Assembly (NCBI RefSeq): GCF_006345805.1 | Contig: NW_021823709.1 | Span: 1-21,455, forward strand | Direction: 5' to 3' | Origin: Octopus sinensis | Lineage: Eukaryota | Length of the DNA stretch: 21,455 nt | Shown here: positions 1,313 through 20,899 of the stretch, piece by piece | Layout of the letters: the number at the start of each line of letters is the position of its first letter | How positions within the stretch are numbered: position 1 is the first letter of the stretch | Made by a program: the position numbers and the translations under genes | The notes under the pieces: generated by a model | The model's input: only the letters and a program-made list of their open reading frames with translations | Told to the model about the DNA's origin: nothing | The model's database searches: none

Positions 1313-2197
1313 CAGGGTGCGAGGGGTAAAGTTACGCCGTTTGGTATTTTTAATTTCGCGCATGCGCATTGTTTGATTTTGATTTTGTCAACTACACAGT
1401 ATAGTAGGGTCAGTTGGGCACCGTCCGTGAGGAAAACAGTACCATGACGCAATTCACTCTGCCACAAATTTGGAAACGACATGCTATACTACTTGGCATT
1501 CGTGCCAGAAGCTCCAATACGAGCAGATGGTGACCACACAGAACAACCGTTGGCTTGTCGTGTCCCCAAAACATGTACCGAGAGTGATAAAAATCAAACA
1601 TCCAGTCAACATCATGGTGTTTGGAGTGATCACTAGTGAAGCTGACGTTATGCTTCCATTCATCTTCCCACACGGCCTCAGACTCAACACGGAGGCCTAC
1701 ATCAAGTGCCTGGAAGAGGTAGTGCTGCCCTGGGTCAAGAGGGTGGCTGTTGGAAGACTATCTCTGACCAGAGGACTCTATACCATGCCACACATACAGG
1801 AGAACCCAGTCATGGCTGTCAGACAATTTCTGTGACTACATCACCCATGACATTTGGCCACCTAACTCCCCAGACTTCAACCCCCTTCATTATTATGTGT
1901 GGGGCGCAGTTGAGTGAGAGACCAGCAAAATTCCTTGTAACACCAAAGATGAACTGAAGGCAAGGATCATGACAGCATTCACCAACTTAAACAAGGAAAC
2001 CGTCCAGAAGAGTTGCAAGAGATTCCGAAGTCGTCTGGAGGCCATTGTTGAAGCCAATGGTGGTTTTATCGAATAGATTTACTCTTCAGTATTTCAAGAT
2101 AATTTTACGTAATTTTGGTAAATATATCTGTTAGAATGAGCTGTCAGTACTATTTTCACTTTTGCGTAATGTAATCCGCAGTTCATTCACCGCGCCG
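1313..2197 (+). mobile_element. Internally deleted Tc1/mariner element, DD37D (maT-type)
   Basis: TA at 1311-1312 then CAGGGTG start; degenerate inverted end near 2172-2199; transposase remnant inside. Confidence 0.8.
1444..2076 (+). pseudogene. DD37D transposase pseudogene
   Basis: ATG at 1444 (MTQFTLPQIWKRHAILLGIR) jumps to the catalytic domain: KHPVNIMVFGVITSE, then after a frameshift DSIPCH...WPPNSPDFNPL(H)YYVWG...RFRSRLEAIVEANGGFIE*; 37 residues between D2 and the D3 position (mutated to H); internal stop. Confidence 0.85.
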
Positions 2198-4420: not shown

Positions 4421-5092
4421 AATAAAAAAGAATACCAAACAATCTAAAATATACGTATATACACTAAACATACAGACGTAGGTACATGGCTAAATACATA
4501 TACGGACATATATAGGCAAAAAACATAAATGCATACATACGTACGCACATACACACATACTTATATCGTGCGGGACATAGACATCGGTTTACTTAGATCC
4601 ATATAGTCATACGCACTCCCGTAAAGGGGTTGGCGTGTGTCCTTGCTCTGTACCATACAGGCATCATCGAGCACACACACACACATAAGTACACACACAC
4701 AACACACACACACACACATACACGTACACGCTTATTTTCACGTACATTTGCGCACACACATACATACACATACTTACATATACACCCAGCACCATGCTAA
4801 TAGCTTAGGAGTGAAATTTAGGATTTCTTGGTTTTCTGAGAATCGATTTTGGTAAAACTTTTCCCAGCTTCTTTGCACACTATAGCAACACCATTGTTAT
4901 GTTTTCATTCTACTATGAAACGTCCTTTCTTTTTTTATTTCAGATTCTTCAGTTTTTTGGGTGAACCATGCTAATGCAAGCTTATAGCTTTTGAATGAAA
5001 ATAGCCCACTTAGACATTTTTTTTCAGAAATTGAAGGGTAATGATACATATTAAGCATACATTGAGTATATATTTAATAGAAAACAATAATA

Positions 5093-5517: not shown

Positions 5518-6570
5518 TTATTTAGTCACATGAGCGACATTTCGACAGAGAACTTCAAAACCTCATCAGTCATGGAATCTGTCAATTTTTTAATAGTAGC
5601 AGGTTGGACTGCTATTGTTGCAGCTTTGATGGTCGACCATAAGACATCCTACGGCGTAAATTGGCGACCATCGCCATAAACATCTTGTTTAATGATGCAT
5701 CAAAGATTTTCGATAGGGTTGAGATCCGGAGATGCTAGCGGCCATACCATCATCCTTTCACCTTGTATGCCGTAAGACCCTAGGAATTTTTGGGTGGTAC
5801 TTGTAGAGCGGGAGGGAGCGTTTTCATGCATGAATACGAGATTGCTTAGAAGTGACAGCCAGGGATCCAAGACCTCCTCCAGGAGATTGCACTAAGCGGT
5901 TGTGGTCACTAAGCGGCGAGCTGGCAGAAACGTTAGCACACCAGGCGAAATGTGTAGCCGTATTTCGTCTGCCGTTAGGTTCTGAGTTCAAATTCCGCCG
6001 AGGTCGCGTTTGCCTTTCATCCTTTCGGGGTCGATTAAATAAGTACCACTCACGCACTGGGGTCGATGTAATCGACTTAATCCGTTTGTCTGTCCTTGTT
6101 TGTCCTCTCTGTATTTAGCCCCTTGTGGGTAGTAAAGAAATAGGTTGTGGTCACTCTCCAATGATACTAGTCCACAACATGACTCATCCACCCCGTTCTT
6201 GACGTCGAAACGTTGGTGATGTTCGTCTCCAAAATAGACCCAAACATTTGCCCAACTGTCAGGTTCGTCAAGGGTCGCCTTGGTTTCGTCAGTGAACAGA
6301 ACACAACTCATGTCTAATGTCATGTACTTTTGGGCCCATTTAAGCCTCAAATTCCTGTAAGAAGGCAGTTTCCAGAGTTCTCGCACGGAAGCCACGGTCT
6401 CGAGGATGCGATTTCTGGTAGTTTTCGGTACATGAGGAAGTCCAGGGGAGGTGAAAATGGCTTTGCTTGTTTGTCCAGGTTCCCCACGTAACTTGCGGCC
6501 AATATTCCTTAAATCCCTGGCTATCACAGTCTTGGGGGTCCACAATCAGATCGTTACTTCCTTGGCACTC
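5518..6570 (-). pseudogene. DD37E transposase pseudogene lacking its N-terminus
   Basis: VLFTDETKATLDEPDSW, RRQERGG*VMLW, FMHENAPS...GIQGERMMVWPLASPDLNPIENL*; 37 residues between D2 (mutated to E) and E; frameshifts, stops and a SINE insertion. Confidence 0.88.
5911..6142 (+). mobile_element. SINE family B inserted into the DD37E transposase
   Basis: 13-bp perfect TSD ggttgtggtcact at 5898-5910 and 6143-6155. Confidence 0.93.
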
Positions 6571-7675: not shown

Positions 7676-7993
7676 AATATTAAATCTCTGAGCAAGAAGG
7701 CAAGAAGTAAACAGTAGCAGCACAGAATCGTGAAGTATATTTGCCACCTAAATGTGGCGCTCCCATATGGGACGATGCTACTGTTCTTTATAGCCCCGGG
7801 AGGACATCTCATCCAGCTGGTTAATGACACACTGTCTGCCCCCGATAAGTATTTGCGAAGGGAAATCTTCGTTCCAATCTCTAGCCTTAGGTGATACACA
7901 CAGACCCGGGTTTCTGAGCAATAACCCGTCATCAGTGTGTAATAATCACCAGCTGACGCATCCCCCATGGGACCGCCACATTTAGGTGGAAAA

Positions 7994-7995
<2 letters not shown>
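7676..7995 (-). mobile_element. Hammerhead-bearing Penelope-like/retrozyme-like element, copy 2
   Basis: 35-bp inverted repeat, 31/35 identical (7738-7772 / 7961-7995); contains an intact HHR core; terminus aatattaaatctctga shared with 5093-5153. Confidence 0.7.
7890..7950 (-). ncRNA. Minimal type I hammerhead ribozyme
   Basis: ggtgat-tat-tacaca CTGATGA cgggttattgctca GAAA cccggg TC tgtgtg-t-atcacc: stems I and II, palindromic stem III ACCCGGGT, GUC cleavage triplet. Confidence 0.82.
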
Positions 7996-8067
<72 letters not shown>

Positions 8068-8095
8068 CCGATCCTTCTATCTATCTATCTATCTG

Positions 8096-8167
<72 letters not shown>

Positions 8168-8170
8168 CCG

Positions 8171-8212
<42 letters not shown>

Positions 8213-8232
8213 ATCTATCTATCTATCTATCG
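7995..8232. repeat. (CTAT)n / GATA tetranucleotide microsatellite
   Basis: About 240 bp of near-perfect CTAT with a few interruptions. Confidence 0.97.
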
Positions 8233-8435
8233 CGGTTCACCTATCGCGGTTTATTATTTAAGCTCACGTCGATGCCTCCGTGGTGTCGTTTTGCATTTAT
8301 AATTAAAAAAATATATACAAATTATAAAAACAATAAAAAATATATACAGACAGTACAGTACTGCTTCTGCTTCGCGGATTTCCACATATCGCGGAGATGG
8401 AATGTATCACCTGCGATAGTCGAGGGATTACCGTA
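8226..8435. mobile_element. Tigger/pogo-like MITE remnant
   Basis: Right end cgatagtcgagggattaccg+TA with tatcgcgg subterminal motifs; left end reduced to tatcgcggttcacctatcgcgg. Confidence 0.55.
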
Positions 8436-9870: not shown

Positions 9871-10250
9871 TTTATATATAAAAGTAAGGTTTTGTATCTG
9901 TCTCCTACGATTTAGATTCCTAACTACTCCCACATTTTGCGGTGCAGTTTAACCAAAACCGGGTATCTTATAGTCGTGATTCATATCGAGCCCTTCTGGG
10001 TATTAGCGCGCGTCTACGATTTTAAAAATAATTTACCATCATTTTTTTCATTTTAATGCATTTTTTCGCTATTATATAAGGGAAGTAACTCTCTAAAAAT
10101 GTCTACGATGAGTCAACGATTTAAAAAAAAAATTACCATCATTTTTTTCCATTTTTAATGCATTTTTGCTACTTTTTGGCTATAACTCTCTAAAAATGCT
10201 TTATAGTTATTTCCCTTACAAACCCGAGCAACGCCGGGCGATACTGCTAG
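9871..10250 (+). mobile_element. Non-autonomous Helitron, copy 1
   Basis: 3' hairpin cccgagcaacgccggg 8 nt before terminal CTAG; 5' TC decayed to TT; homologous to 16747-17248; internal tandem duplication 10012-10100 / 10101-10197. Confidence 0.8.
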
Positions 10251-10589
10251 AATACATATAAATGTGTGTGTGTGTAGATATACATAGGTACATATAACTG
10301 AATATATTCAGTAGATAAATGTATGTGTGCAAGGATATACATGTGTATCTTTATATATATATATATATATATATATAGTCTTTGAATTTTCCTAAAGAAA
10401 TGAGATGGAATACTGCATCAACCCTTTCATATTGTTCTTTATTGTGCGTTCCTTTTTAGTGCTGAACTTTATAATTTTCTTCATCACGTATTAGTTATCG
10501 TTTGTATATAGGTACTGATAGTTTTGTTAACCTTTGTGTATTTAAAAATAGTTATTAACATCAAAACCAATCGTTATGGCGATGAAATA

Positions 10590-10850
10590 TTCTTCAAAAT
10601 ATTTTAAACAGAAAATGCAATTATAATTTAAAGTATAGAAGCCATCTTATCATGGCTAACCACATTGGGGAGGGGGTGTTACTGTAGCTTTATAGCCCCA
10701 AGAAATCTTCGTCTCTAGCTGGCTTTAGACACAATATCTGTGTCCTTGGAGTATTTGCAAAGGGAGGCCATCCCTTCCTCGCAAGCCTGAGTGATACGCT
10801 CGAACTAGTTTCGGGATTGTTGTCCCTCGTCAACGGGTGGTCCTTATGAG
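10590..10850 (-). mobile_element. Hammerhead-bearing element, copy 3 (decayed)
   Basis: About 150 bp aligns with copy 1; TTGACGA ggga-caacaa-tccc GAAA ctag TT at 10833-10803. Confidence 0.6.
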
Positions 10851-11734
10851 AAAACATTGGAGAAACACACAGACACAAAAAAAGCAGCCAGCAACCCCAG
10901 CAACTCCCCTGCATTAAGTATTATATATATATTAAAGCTGGACAAATAAATATTATTGTTTTATGTTGACTTTCTCATTAAAAAAACGAAAACGCCCATA
11001 TCTGAAGAAGTTGGACAGGCGGTGTGACTATGTCACTTTTAAAATGTGGCACCAACAGCAAGGAATATAGGTAAATAGAAAGATGGTAGATACAGCAGAG
11101 AGAGGAAAGGAGGGGGACCGGGGGAGAAAGGAAATTTTCAAATAGATAAGATAAATATTTGTTTTCTCCAGTTGAAGGTTTAATCCTGATATGGCACTGG
11201 GAGAGTTTTGAGAGCAACGACTTTAAAGATTACAAGAAAATCGAGAATTTTGGAACGAAAAATCTTTCGTACATATCCTTATATTTAAGCATACATATAC
11301 ATTCACGTATACATACATACATACACACATATCTACTACATACATACATACATGCATACATACACATATACATATATATATATATATATACACAAATTGA
11401 TACATGTGTGTACACGATATATATGCAGGTCTATCTATATAGCTACTTATCTATCTATTAGATCGATCAATAGATAAGAGATGGGTCTGATTGATTTCGA
11501 TTATCTCATCGTGATAACCAGCAATATGAAAAATAAAAGCCAATATGGCGTAGGGTGAGGATTCTCAATGTTCATTGTTTTCTTAAAATATGGCAAGATG
11601 TTACGACTTGATACAGCCAACTAAAACCCTTCTCTGATGGGAAGAAAGTCGTAACATCTGGCCAAGTAGTAAGAAGTCAATAAAAAGCATGTTTGAGTGT
11701 GTTTGTGTGTCATTGTGTTTGTCTCACAAGAAGG

Positions 11735-13086: not shown

Positions 13087-13512
13087 CCTATTTCTTTACT
13101 ACCCACAAGGGGCTAAACACAGAGAGGACAAACAAGGACAGACAGACAGACGGATTAAGTCGATTATATCGACCCCAGTGCGTAACTGGTACTTAGTTTA
13201 TCGACCCCCGAAAAGATGAAAGATAAAGTCAACCTCGGCGGAATTTGAACTCAGAACGTAGCGGCAGACGAAATACCTATTTCTTTACTACCCACAAGGG
13301 GCTAAACATAGAGAGGACAAACAAGGACAGACAGACAGACGGATTAAGTCGATTATATCGACCCCAGTGCGTAACTGGTACTTATTTGATCGACCCCGAA
13401 AGGATGAAAAGCAAAGTCAACCTCGGCGGAATTGGAAGCCAGAACGTAACGGCAGACGAAATACAGCTACGCATTTCGCCCGGCGTGCTAACGTTTCTGC
13501 CAGCTCGCCGCC
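13087..13512 (-). mobile_element. SINE family B with head-to-tail duplicated body
   Basis: Same dimer junction (aaagaaataggtatttcgtctgcc) as the 11828 copy. Confidence 0.92.
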
Positions 13513-13689
13513 CTCAGAATTTCTACATATATTCTATAGAAATTACTGATCTTTACTACGTTTCGATCTCGTTTGTTTTCATCTGACGTCTCGTGTATGA
13601 AATGCTGTAGCAAAGATCCACACTGGTTGCAGTTTTTATAGAATAATATTTTAATCCGAATGCTTAGACCAAGTAAAAGGAAGTTAGAA

Positions 13690-16320: not shown

Positions 16321-16724
16321 CTTTTACTCTTTACACTTTTTACTTGTTTCAGTCATTTGACTGCGGCCATGCTGGAGCACCGCCTTTAGTCGAGCAAATC
16401 GACCCCGGGACTTATTCTTTGTAAGCCCAGTACTTATTCTATCGGTCTCTTTTGCCGAACCGCTATGTTACGGGGACATAAACACACCAGCATCGGTTGT
16501 CAAGCAATGCTAGGGGGACAAACACAGACACACAAACACATACACACACATACATATATTCGACAGGTTTCTTTCAGTTTCCTTCTACCAAATCCACTCA
16601 CAAGGCATTGGTCGGCCCGGGGCTATAGCAGAAGACACTTGCCCAAGATGCCACGCAATGGGACTGAACCCGGAACCATGTGGTTGGTTGGCAAGTTACT
16701 TACCACACAGCCACTCCTGCGCCT
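16321..16724 (-). mobile_element. SINE family A, full length
   Basis: Near-identical to 7242-7664. Confidence 0.92.
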
Positions 16725-16746
16725 ATATTTTATAATTTATCATTAA

Positions 16747-17248
16747 CTAGCAGTATCGCCCGGCGTTGCTCGGGTTTGTAAGGGAAATAACTATATAAGC
16801 ATTTTTAGAGAGTTACTTCCTTATAAATTCGGGCTTCTTAGCCATTTTGTTTTGGTGTCTTCAAGCCATGAAGTCGTTGTTCTAAAAGAACGCTGGTTTC
16901 CTAACAACGCATTACGACGTTGATTTCTTTACACTCCCTTCCCCACAGCTTCACGAGGGAGGGAAGGGGGAGAAGCAAACAGGTGCAGCTGTGAGCGTGG
17001 ACGCCAACTCCGTCGCCATCGACATACGATGCATTTTATGCATTAAAATGGAATAAAAAATGATGTTAAATTATTTTTAAAATCGTAGACTCATCGTTGA
17101 CGCGCGCTAATAGTCAGACGGGCTCGATATGAATCACGACTATAAGATACCCGAATTTGGTTAAACTGCACCGCAAAATGTGGGAGGAGTTAGGAATCTA
17201 AATCGAAGGGGACAGACACTCACACAACTAGAGTTTTATATATATAGA
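16747..17248 (-). mobile_element. Non-autonomous Helitron, copy 2
   Basis: A|TC 5' end at 17248, CTAG|T 3' end at 16747, subterminal GC hairpin, no TSD. Confidence 0.88.
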
Positions 17249-17373
17249 TATGCTGCGGCCATCCTTAGCGTCACTCTTCAAGAGTTTAGTTCAATATTTG
17301 TTTTTGGTCCATTTTTTAGAAAAAAAATATGTAGTCTGGTTGAAAGAAAAACAAATGCAGAAAGAAAGTTGGT

Positions 17374-17379
17374 TTTATT
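17374..17379 (-). terminator. Candidate polyadenylation signal of the H2B variant
   Basis: AATAAA 17 nt after the stop, followed by a U-rich tract (ctttctttctgcatttgttttctttc). Confidence 0.6.
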
Positions 17380-17396
17380 TTACTAAACTTTTCTTT

Positions 17397-17783
17397 TTAT
17401 TTACTATTCATATACTTCGTAACGGCCTTCGAACCCTCACTGATGGCATGCTTACTCAATGCCCCAGGCAGGAGTAGACGCACAGATGTTTGAATGTCTC
17501 TGCTCGTGATGGTAGCTCGTTTGTTGATGTAGGCCAAGCGAGAAGATTCTGCCGAAATTCTCTCAAACCAATCGTTAACAAAGTTATTCATTATTGAAAT
17601 GGCTTTTGACGTAATCCCAATATCTGGGTGAACTTGTTTTAATACTTTATAAATGTATAAAGAAAAGGTCTCTTGCCGTCGCTTCCTCGACGCAGTTCGT
17701 CGTGAATTTATCTCTCTTTGGCTGGCAAACTTTTTTGTAGCTTTTTTCGAAGCTTTGGTGATTGATGCGGATTTTGAAGACAT
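17397..17783 (-). CDS. H2B: Histone H2B, divergent variant (128 aa)
   Basis: Intact ORF with histone fold [10 protein letters not shown]...FVND.FERI..E.SRLA..NKR.TITSR.IQT.VRLLLPG..SKHA.SEG.KAVTKY; aagATG context; in-frame TGA shortly upstream; 67/91 identical to human H2B over residues 35-125 by hand count. Confidence 0.93.
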
Positions 17784-17895
17784 CTTCGGATCGTCTTCGT
17801 TCTGCCGATTTTCGCTTTGTGTTTTTTTTCACTCCGAGTTTTCGTATAGAAGAAACTCAACAGGAAAAACTTTTTTTATTTTCTTAATGTTCAAC

Positions 17896-17917
17896 CTAAA
17901 AAGAAGAAAAAAAAAAC
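17896..17917 (-). promoter_or_regulatory. Candidate 3' splice acceptor in the H2B 5'UTR
   Basis: tttttttttcttctttttag|G, 112 nt upstream of the ATG with no intervening ATG. Confidence 0.5.
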
Positions 17918-17930
17918 GAGATGAATATAT

Positions 17931-18318
17931 AGGCGCAGGAGTGGCTGTGTGGTAAGTAGCTTGCTTACGAACCACATGGTTCAGGGTTCAGTCCCACTGC
18001 GTGGCACCTTGGGCAAGTGACATCTACTATAGCCCCGGGCCAACCAATGTCCTGTGAGTGAATTTGGTAGACGGAAACTGAAAGAAGCCCGTCGTATATA
18101 TGTATATATATATATATGTGTGTGTGTGTTGTGTGTTTGTGTGTCTGTCCACCTAGCATTGCTCGACAACCGATGCTGGTGTGTTTACGTCCCCGTCACT
18201 TAGCGGTTCGGCAAAAGAGACCGATAGAATAAGTCCTTGGGTCTAGTTGCTCGACAAAAGGCGGTGCTCCAGCATGGCCGCAGTCAAATGACTGAAACAA
18301 GTAAAAGAGTAAAAAGAG
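17931..18318 (+). mobile_element. SINE family A, full length
   Basis: Complete head aggcgcaggagtggctgtgtggtaag, internal microsatellite, tail. Confidence 0.92.
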
Positions 18319-18359
18319 TATATATTTACTATAAGGGCGCGTTTGAATGTGTCGATAAG

Positions 18360-18806
18360 ATCACTTTGCAACTTCGTGGATGCAGGTTCAGTCTCACAGC
18401 GTGGCACGTTGGGCAAGTGCCTTCTACTACAGTCTCGGGCCAGCAAATGCCTTGGGAGTGAATTTGGTTGGCGGAAACTGTGCAGAAGTCCATCGCGCGC
18501 GTGCGCGTCTTTGTATTAGTGTCTTTCCAATATCGACAAAAAGGGCTAAAATCAACCCAGTGCCATCGCCGTTTTATGACCAATGATGGTTTGTTTCTGT
18601 CCCTGTAATTGAGCGGTTCGGCAAGATAGACCGACGGAATAGGCACCAGACTTTTCTCAGTTTCCGTCTACCAAATCCATTCACAGGTTTCGGTCGGCCT
18701 GAGGCTATAGTTTAAGACACTTGCCCAAGGTGTCACACAATTGGACTGAACCCGGAATCAAGTGGTTCGCAAGCAAAATTCTCACCATATATCCACACCT
18801 GCACCT
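18360..18806. mobile_element. Decayed SINE A copies in opposite orientations (about 18360-18650 plus; 18653-18806 minus)
   Basis: ggttcagtc..gtggcac.ttgggcaagtg and its reverse complement. Confidence 0.75.
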
Positions 18807-20282: not shown

Positions 20283-20525
20283 CTCTTTTACTTGTTTCAG
20301 TCATTTGATTGCGGCCATGCTGGAGCACCACATTAAGGGGAGTTTAGTCGAACAAATCGACCTCGGGATTTATTCTTAGTAAGCTTAGTACTCTTTCTAT
20401 CGGGGTTTTTTGCCGAACCGCTAAGTTACAGAGATGTAAACACACCGACACCAGTTGTCAAGCGGTGATGGGGTGGGGGGACAAACACACATACACACAT
20501 AGATACACATACACACACACGCATA

Positions 20526-20584
<59 letters not shown>

Positions 20585-20781
20585 ATCTATATCTATATAT
20601 ATATATATATGTATTTACGATGGGCTTCTTTCAGTTTCCGTCTACCAAATCCACTCACAAGGCTTTGGTCGGCCCGAGGCTATAGTAGAAGACACTTGCC
20701 CAAGTTTCCACACAGTGGGATTGAACGCGGAACCATGTGGTTGGGAAGTAAAGTTCTTACCACACAGCCACACCTGCGCCT
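20283..20781 (-). mobile_element. SINE family A with expanded internal (CTAT)n
   Basis: Full head and tail; microsatellite slot contains (CA)n, (CTAT)n and (TA)n. Confidence 0.9.
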
Positions 20782-20899
20782 GTATACATTGAGAGTGTAG
20801 ATTTTCTGGCGTCAGATTAATGGAATAAGTATTTCATCCCAGATCATCGAGGTAATTTTTTTTTAAGAAGAGATGTATTTTATTTAATATCAATGGATC

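Follow-up and report, generated by a model that had tools for sequence, protein, structure and literature searches.

A single, strongly diverged histone H2B reading frame lies in repeat-rich DNA of Octopus sinensis, and the question raised by this locus is whether the frame encodes a working H2B variant or a copy that is losing its function. The window analysed here is the whole of contig VCDQ01003400.1 (21,455 nucleotides; assembly GCA_006345805.1), as identified by look-up of the exact protein. With a probability of roughly two in three, we favour a functional H2B variant gene of the octopod lineage, which is single-copy, stands outside the histone clusters, is most likely expressed as a polyadenylated mRNA and should replace canonical H2B in nucleosomes. 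The O. sinensis protein is already present in NCBI and UniRef, where it was predicted under an automatic name, so it is not a new gene call. No paper on this gene was found in the literature, apart from a possible count in a molluscan histone survey (PMC12210499).

Identity, ends and surroundings of the gene

The reading frame runs from ATG to TAA, encodes 128 amino acids and is intronless in its coding part (Table 1). It was compared with the orthologous locus of O. bimaculoides (L001) and with the locus, or contig, of a third octopod (L002). The protein matched the Pfam family PF00125 (Histone) with 72.4 bits (E=5e-20; cut-off 26.4), and a phmmer search of solved structures aligned its residues 10-128 to residues 6-125 of H2B chains with E about 1e-45, H2B chains making up 60/60 of the matches listed. 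The ORF is a real histone H2B, far beyond chance. Alignment to the solved H2Bs is weak in the N-terminal tail. The H2B signature stretches are found with few changes, the exceptions in O. sinensis being PGEL (E to A) and EGTK (T to S), and the basic RKRR patch before alpha1, E113 and the equivalent of K120 are kept. BLASTP against the human H2B chain of PDB 8GRQ gave 67/93 identities over residues 32-124. The initial annotation had described an intact 128-residue frame with 24 differences from human H2B in 91 positions. The frame is intact, with exactly the sequence quoted there, and the count is reproduced when the 22 differences over residues 38-124 are joined by two at the human C-terminus (M125 and N126 against human T/S); we take the natural human C-terminus to be TSSK and the 8GRQ construct to be engineered at that place.

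Table 1. Coordinates of the H2B variant gene, its flanking elements and other features of the window
Feature	Position	Strand	Remarks
H2B variant CDS	17397..17783	(-)	128 codons plus TAA at 17397-17399; from the ORF list
Serine/threonine-rich basic tail	residues 1-36		part of the H2B variant CDS
Histone fold plus alpha-C helix	residues 37-128		part of the H2B variant CDS
AATAAA, candidate polyadenylation signal	17396..17401	(-)	overlaps the stop codon; conserved in three species; at 562-567 in L002
Second AATAAA	17374..17379	(-)	at nt 18-23 past the stop; conserved between O. sinensis and O. bimaculoides; falls in a deletion of the third species
3' flank without histone 3' stem-loop	16900..17396	(-)	Rfam and consensus pattern
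Conserved upstream segment, putative 5' UTR	17784..17897	(-)	three-species alignment
TATATATTCATCTC motif, TATA-box-like	17918..17931	(-)	about 150 nt upstream of the ATG; in all three species
tRNA-derived SINE-like repeat	17924..18300	(+)	adjoins the gene on its 5' side; context only, outside the gene itself; D13/D15/D17, I5/I7/I12
MicroRNA-artefact regions	1-1300, 4495-4566, 10315-10381, 11284-11430		Rfam

Searches by tblastn with H2A, H3 and H4 found none of them, either in the 21.5-kb contig or in the 20 kb that surround the orthologue of O. bimaculoides. Hence the variant is solitary and lies outside a histone cluster, as had been stated for the window and is now borne out at the orthologous locus also. 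In O. bimaculoides, the H2B gene lies antisense inside a larger gene, whose product has 2544 residues. When all stop-to-stop ORFs of the window were compared with L001, no exons of this host gene were found and no frame was preferentially conserved. An AT-rich noncoding block at 10363-10628 (L001 16762-17029) is 94% identical between the two Octopus species, compared with about 84-92% for its neighbours. No reading frame in this block is conserved above the others, and it may be a regulatory element within an intron of the host gene.

The 3' flank carries no recognisable histone 3' stem-loop. The Rfam model RF00032 gave no match in the window at E<=1 or in 16900-17420 at E<=10, the consensus stem-loop pattern gave none in the 3' flank with three mismatches allowed, and none was found in the orthologous loci L001 and L002 either. 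Because an AATAAA lies at the stop codon and the stem-loop is missing, the mRNA is probably polyadenylated and replication-independent.

Upstream of the ATG, the conserved segment starts at a pyrimidine run followed by AG (17896-17897), and an A occupies position -3 of the ATG. The stretch of about 150 nt from the TATA-like motif to the ATG is 89% identical to O. bimaculoides and 79% identical to L002, compared with about 69-72% in unconstrained flank of the L002 pair. The motif itself, TATATATTCATCTC (TATATA(T/G)TCATCTC), is kept although the DNA upstream of it differs among the three species. It may act as a TATA promoter, the start then lying about 35 nt further downstream. It is equally possible that the pyrimidine run and AG form a splice acceptor for an untranslated 5' exon. 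The assignment as a promoter is weak because the motif lies at the edge of a SINE, and promoter function, like any tissue specificity, is something we infer. Since an in-frame stop at 17829-17831 precedes the H2B ATG, the same protein is expected under both readings.

The window is densely packed with SINE-like repeats and microsatellites, and the SINE-like repeat that abuts the gene has at least six copies in it. This SINE (17924-18300) borders the gene on its 5' side in both O. sinensis and L002 (1-36), with 88.6% identity over the part covered. O. bimaculoides has one SINE-like copy (L001 9470-9888) and O. sinensis has two in tandem (17924-18300 and 18300-18700), a difference that suggests either that recombination between tandem SINEs removed a copy in O. 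bimaculoides or that the insertions were independent, at a TA-rich target. Moreover, an unclassified 127-nt repeat forms an inverted pair (9894-10020 and 17093-17219) with 92% complementarity, and the copy at 17093-17219 begins about 180 nt beyond the H2B stop, where the sequence is without a counterpart in the third-species contig. Long arrays of an 8-nt unit at 7938-8277 and 20466-20600, seen as 'LSIY' repeats in translation, create spurious long ORFs at 7967-8302 and 20465-20800. The ORFs at 5988-6545 (-), 1470-1835 (+) and 13245-13586 (+) look like fragments of Tc1/mariner transposases by eye. None of seven longer ORFs, these transposase-like ones included, gave a Pfam match at E<=0.01, and the initial statement that every transposase in the window has decayed is not confirmed by Pfam. 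The O. bimaculoides locus also contains part of 5991-6545, conserved to 81% at the amino acid level, which is thus an old shared insertion. Rfam matches to microRNAs (mir-297, mir-3149, mir-1277 and others) were rejected as artefacts; they fall in TA/TG microsatellites, with scores far below the gathering thresholds.

Orthologues and selection in the octopod family

In reverse orientation, the window aligns collinearly to chromosome CM046620.1 of O. bimaculoides near 42.2 Mb. The many collinear blocks amount to about 14 kb and are 84-94% identical, and the H2B gene lies at the matching place. The orthologue there (P0016; XP_052830905.1; UniRef A0A0L8GYH3) has 129 amino acids, 87-88% identity to the O. 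sinensis protein and the same flanking motifs. It differs by one extra codon in the tail and by canonical-type residues where O. sinensis has N67, W72, A90, A108 and S118. Its name, 'late histone H2B.L4-like', apparently stems from automatic best-hit naming after the late histones of sea urchins, and we do not regard it as evidence of orthology to them. An orthologue from a third octopod (P0023), also full-length with 129 amino acids and 80% identity, was obtained from three Logan runs (SRR11869390/91/94). The Logan contigs in question have repeats at both ends and extend 760 nt beyond the stop; they therefore appear to be of genomic and not of transcript origin. The exact O. sinensis protein was found on no Logan contig, the sole contig being the genome record itself.

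In a search with a profile of the three sequences, the members scored 269-275 bits and the next single-domain matches, which are canonical H2Bs, about 190 bits. This gap of about 80 bits divides the three octopod members from canonical H2Bs, and the family in the searched database is therefore made up of these three sequences; single-sequence and profile searches of 5.8 billion proteins gave no further members. Each 90%-identity cluster consists of a single member, and each genome shows one copy. Syntenic orthologues in other octopods and squids had been proposed as a check in the initial annotation, and full-length ones occur in O. bimaculoides, at the matching chromosomal place, and in a third octopod. 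The variant gene is specific to the octopod lineage and has been kept for a long time at one chromosomal spot.

Selection was estimated among the three species from pairwise dN/dS by the Nei-Gojobori method and from branch counts obtained by assigning single-taxon differences, and these estimates rest on small counts from three species only. Whole-gene dN/dS was 0.36 between O. sinensis and O. bimaculoides (0.30 in the fold), 0.27 between O. sinensis and the third species (0.19 in the fold) and 0.21 between O. bimaculoides and the third species (0.11 in the fold). In the tail, values of about 0.46-0.49 were found in all pairs. Fold values of 0.11-0.30 indicate a conserved, lineage-specific variant and not a pseudogene. 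Assigned to branches, fold changes were 3 synonymous and 0 nonsynonymous for O. bimaculoides (P=0.011), and 15 synonymous and 8 nonsynonymous for the long branch of the third species plus root (omega about 0.15, P=1e-5). The O. sinensis branch carries 4 synonymous and 7 nonsynonymous fold changes (omega about 0.49, P=0.21), and its dN/dS of about 0.47-0.49 is not significantly below 1 (P=0.10 overall, 0.21 in the fold).

The variant family is under long-term purifying selection. A dN/dS near 1, which in the initial annotation would have counted against a functional variant, is rejected for the family but is not rejected on the O. sinensis branch alone. Its broader claim, that this is a solitary, lineage-specific variant with a long history of an open frame and not a young pseudogene, agrees with the orthologues, the shared derived residues described below and the dN/dS values.

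The O. sinensis branch is accelerated. Nonsynonymous fold changes number 7 in O. sinensis and 0 in its sister O. bimaculoides (exact binomial P=0.016), and synonymous changes over the whole gene are balanced between these two species (7 vs 5). At 11/296 = 0.037, nonsynonymous change in O. sinensis comes near to one half of the noncoding divergence (about 0.043). Flanking noncoding blocks show 0.082 differences per site and 11.2 gap openings per kb, and at 92% nucleotide identity to O. bimaculoides the CDS is barely above these blocks (84-92%). The 387-nt CDS has only 1 indel, of 3 nt and in frame, compared with 4.3 expected at the flank rate (P about 0.03-0.05). Moreover, the frame is intact in all three species, with no frameshift, premature stop or lost start. 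In simulations of a fully neutral O. sinensis terminal branch, the frame survives in 7-10% of runs, a result that is suggestive, but not decisive, against neutrality of this branch.

Derived residues and comparison with known H2Bs

The three octopod proteins were compared with 104 single-domain canonical H2Bs taken from the searches. About 12 family-derived residues occur at sites with little or no variation among these 104 sequences. In window numbering, Q37, L42, I55, T58, I62, S77, S110, I114, M125 and N126 are present in all three octopods; Y85 and D96 are present only in O. sinensis and O. bimaculoides, and the third octopod keeps canonical H and E there. Residue 86 is I in O. sinensis and O. 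bimaculoides and T in the third octopod. Residues Y85, I86 and D96 correspond to human H82Y, Y83I and E93D; they lie on either side of N84, where alpha2 ends and alpha3 begins. In the canonical nucleosome, N84 of H2B has water-mediated bonds to R78 of H4, and replacement of N84 is the sole structural change seen in the testis variant TSH2B (PMC3976059). In the octopus variant, N84 itself is kept, and the changes are at 82, 83 and 93 in human numbering. In addition, Y37 is replaced by F and S36 by T in all three octopod proteins. The tail is basic, of normal length and about 30% Ser/Thr, and no S-P-K/R-K/R (SPKK/SPRK) motif was found in residues 1-36 of the O. sinensis protein.

Several of the most radical changes are private to O. 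sinensis, a point absent from the initial annotation; these private changes are S67N, V72W, S90A, E108A and T118S in window numbering (human S64N, I69W, S87A, E105A and T115S), plus K75R, which goes back to the canonical residue. Five of the private changes are at positions invariant in the 104 canonical H2Bs, of which 104/104 have I, L or V where W72 stands. Human E105 (E108 of the window) is a residue of the acidic patch. I69W and Y83I, which had been picked out from the window alone as changes needing several substitutions, are real, with W in 0/104 and I in 2/104 canonical H2Bs at these columns, and the former codon is GTG (Val) in the orthologues and TGG (Trp) in the window, a difference of two substitutions. 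At 17566-17571 (codons 72-73 of the CDS), GTGTTC has become TGGTTT on the O. sinensis branch; these three substitutions in six bases, which give V72W, appear to be one clustered multi-nucleotide mutation and not separate events. Changes private to the third octopod are A61S, S115N and K123S. Residue 123 of P0023 is Ser (codon AGT) in place of the lysine equivalent to the K120 ubiquitylation site, and this lysine is invariant in the 104 canonical H2Bs. Of the two unique peptides named in the initial annotation for proteomics, LAYINK is tryptic, and the 12-residue one is not, since trypsin would cut before it after K60.

Canonical H2Bs (Drosophila 2PYO chain D, Xenopus and human) have the same full-length fold alpha1-L1-alpha2-L2-alpha3 plus alpha-C, with 71-78% fold identity to the variant. 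Canonical H2B genes are clustered with H2A, H3 and H4, whereas the octopus gene is solitary, is without the 3' stem-loop and has AATAAA; its product has a tail that is not confidently alignable and carries about 12 family-wide plus 5 species-private substitutions at positions invariant in 104 sequences. Canonical H2B protein is almost invariant, which is consistent with the 104-sequence comparison, whereas the fold of the octopus variant has a dN/dS of 0.1-0.3. Mammalian testis TSH2B (H2B.1) is likewise moderately diverged, with a normal fold, a changed tail and substitutions around residue 84 (PMC3976059). However, N84 is replaced in TSH2B and kept in the octopus variant, and testis expression, a known trait of TSH2B, is a candidate trait of the octopus gene. 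The two share no variant ancestry, as the top solved-structure matches of the octopus protein are canonical and H2B type 1-A is not preferred among them. Echinoderm sperm H2B is another invertebrate lineage-specific variant with a modified N-terminal tail. Its tails have repeated SPKK/SPRK in an N-terminal extension, whereas the octopus tail is not extended and is without such repeats. For molluscs, the survey by Guan et al. 2025 (PMC12210499) covers 28 species, and its main text gives H2B variants only for M. gigas (two) and O. vulgaris (one), with none for O. sinensis; for the O. vulgaris variant, the main text holds no sequence, locus or expression data. This O. vulgaris 'H2B variant' may be the same gene in a sister species.

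Competing readings and meaning of the variant

Under the functional reading that we prefer, the variant gene would give a polyadenylated, replication-independent mRNA, and its product should pair with H2A and take the place of canonical H2B in nucleosomes, since the whole fold and the alpha-C helix are kept. The rewritten, S/T-rich tail and the conserved set of substitutions would distinguish this protein from canonical H2B. The most suggestive changes are H82Y, Y83I/T and E93D, which adjoin the H4-contacting N84 and may alter, and probably weaken, the binding between the H2A-H2B dimer and the H3-H4 tetramer. Such a nucleosome could be more easily exchanged, as may be useful for a specialised cell type or stage, with a germline role as one candidate. 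From the positions of these residues in known structures we infer both incorporation into nucleosomes and their destabilisation.

The acceleration of the O. sinensis branch can be read in another way, that the family is functional and the O. sinensis copy has recently lost constraint and is heading to a pseudogene. We regard this as unlikely. The excess of nonsynonymous fold changes in the face of balanced synonymous changes is what such a loss would give, and omega on this branch, at about 0.49, does not differ significantly from 1, although it is still below it. E105A removes the acidic-patch glutamate, Trp has entered a position that is aliphatic throughout the canonical set, and the exact protein is known from the genome record only. 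Moreover, survival of the frame in 7-10% of neutral runs would be higher if relaxation was more recent. On the other hand, the frame, start, -3 A, stop and both AATAAA are intact and the sole indel is in frame; 4/7 of the fold changes are conservative (S/N, K/R back to canonical R, S/A and T/S), and germline histone variants normally evolve fast. Adaptive change is an alternative reading of the same acceleration. It belongs to a more far-reaching version of the functional reading, which we hold to be rather doubtful: octopods would have evolved their own replication-independent H2B variant with a remodelled H2B-H4 contact, followed by lineage-wise loss of E105 in O. sinensis and of the K120 lysine in the third species, pointing to a packaging histone of the germline or early embryo under recurrent adaptive change.

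As a sub-case of the functional reading, the variant could be a male-germline H2B of testis or spermatids, in line with the possible testis or sperm variant of the initial annotation, and would then loosen nucleosomes before their replacement by protamines. This is a tentative proposal, possible but well short of even odds. Many germline histone variants in other animals are solitary, without a stem-loop and with a fast-evolving tail, and the octopus gene is solitary, has no stem-loop and has a tail with omega of about 0.45-0.5. Its changes adjoin N84, whose replacement is the structural effect in TSH2B (PMC3976059). Furthermore, E105 is lost in O. sinensis and the K120 equivalent in L002 (K123S), as expected if somatic chromatin signalling works without this protein. 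However, the third orthologue comes from Logan contigs of genomic appearance, the tail is without the SPKK/SPRK repeats of the sperm-H2B type, and the main text of the molluscan survey gives no tissue data for H2B variants (PMC12210499); expression in oocyte, embryo or neural tissue would fit the sequence data equally well. The idea that the gene was captured or moved by a transposable element, or is a copy of a dispersed repeat, is highly improbable. Inverted SINE-like copies do flank the gene (16528-16731 and 17924-18127, pair I7) in very repeat-rich DNA, but each genome has one copy, the 90%-identity clusters are single-member, the position is syntenic between species and selection acts on the protein. 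In addition, L002 lacks the downstream SINE at the equivalent position, and the inverted SINE pair is therefore not a unit. Copy number and synteny largely refute this origin.

To our knowledge, fewer variants have been described for H2B than for any other core histone, and hardly any have been characterised in lophotrochozoans. The octopus gene is a well-defined candidate rather than a discovery, as it is an already-predicted gene of a familiar kind. Its points of interest are the changes in the H2B-H4 contact region, the loss of E105 or of the K120 equivalent and the species-specific acceleration. If the version with recurrent adaptive change is true, the octopod gene would be an invertebrate counterpart of the rapidly turning-over germline H2B variants of mammals. 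If the gene is germline-expressed, it would offer a handle on the histone-to-protamine transition of cephalopods. Lineage-specific loss of E105 or of the K120-equivalent lysine makes the family a compact natural experiment on which surfaces of H2B are dispensable.
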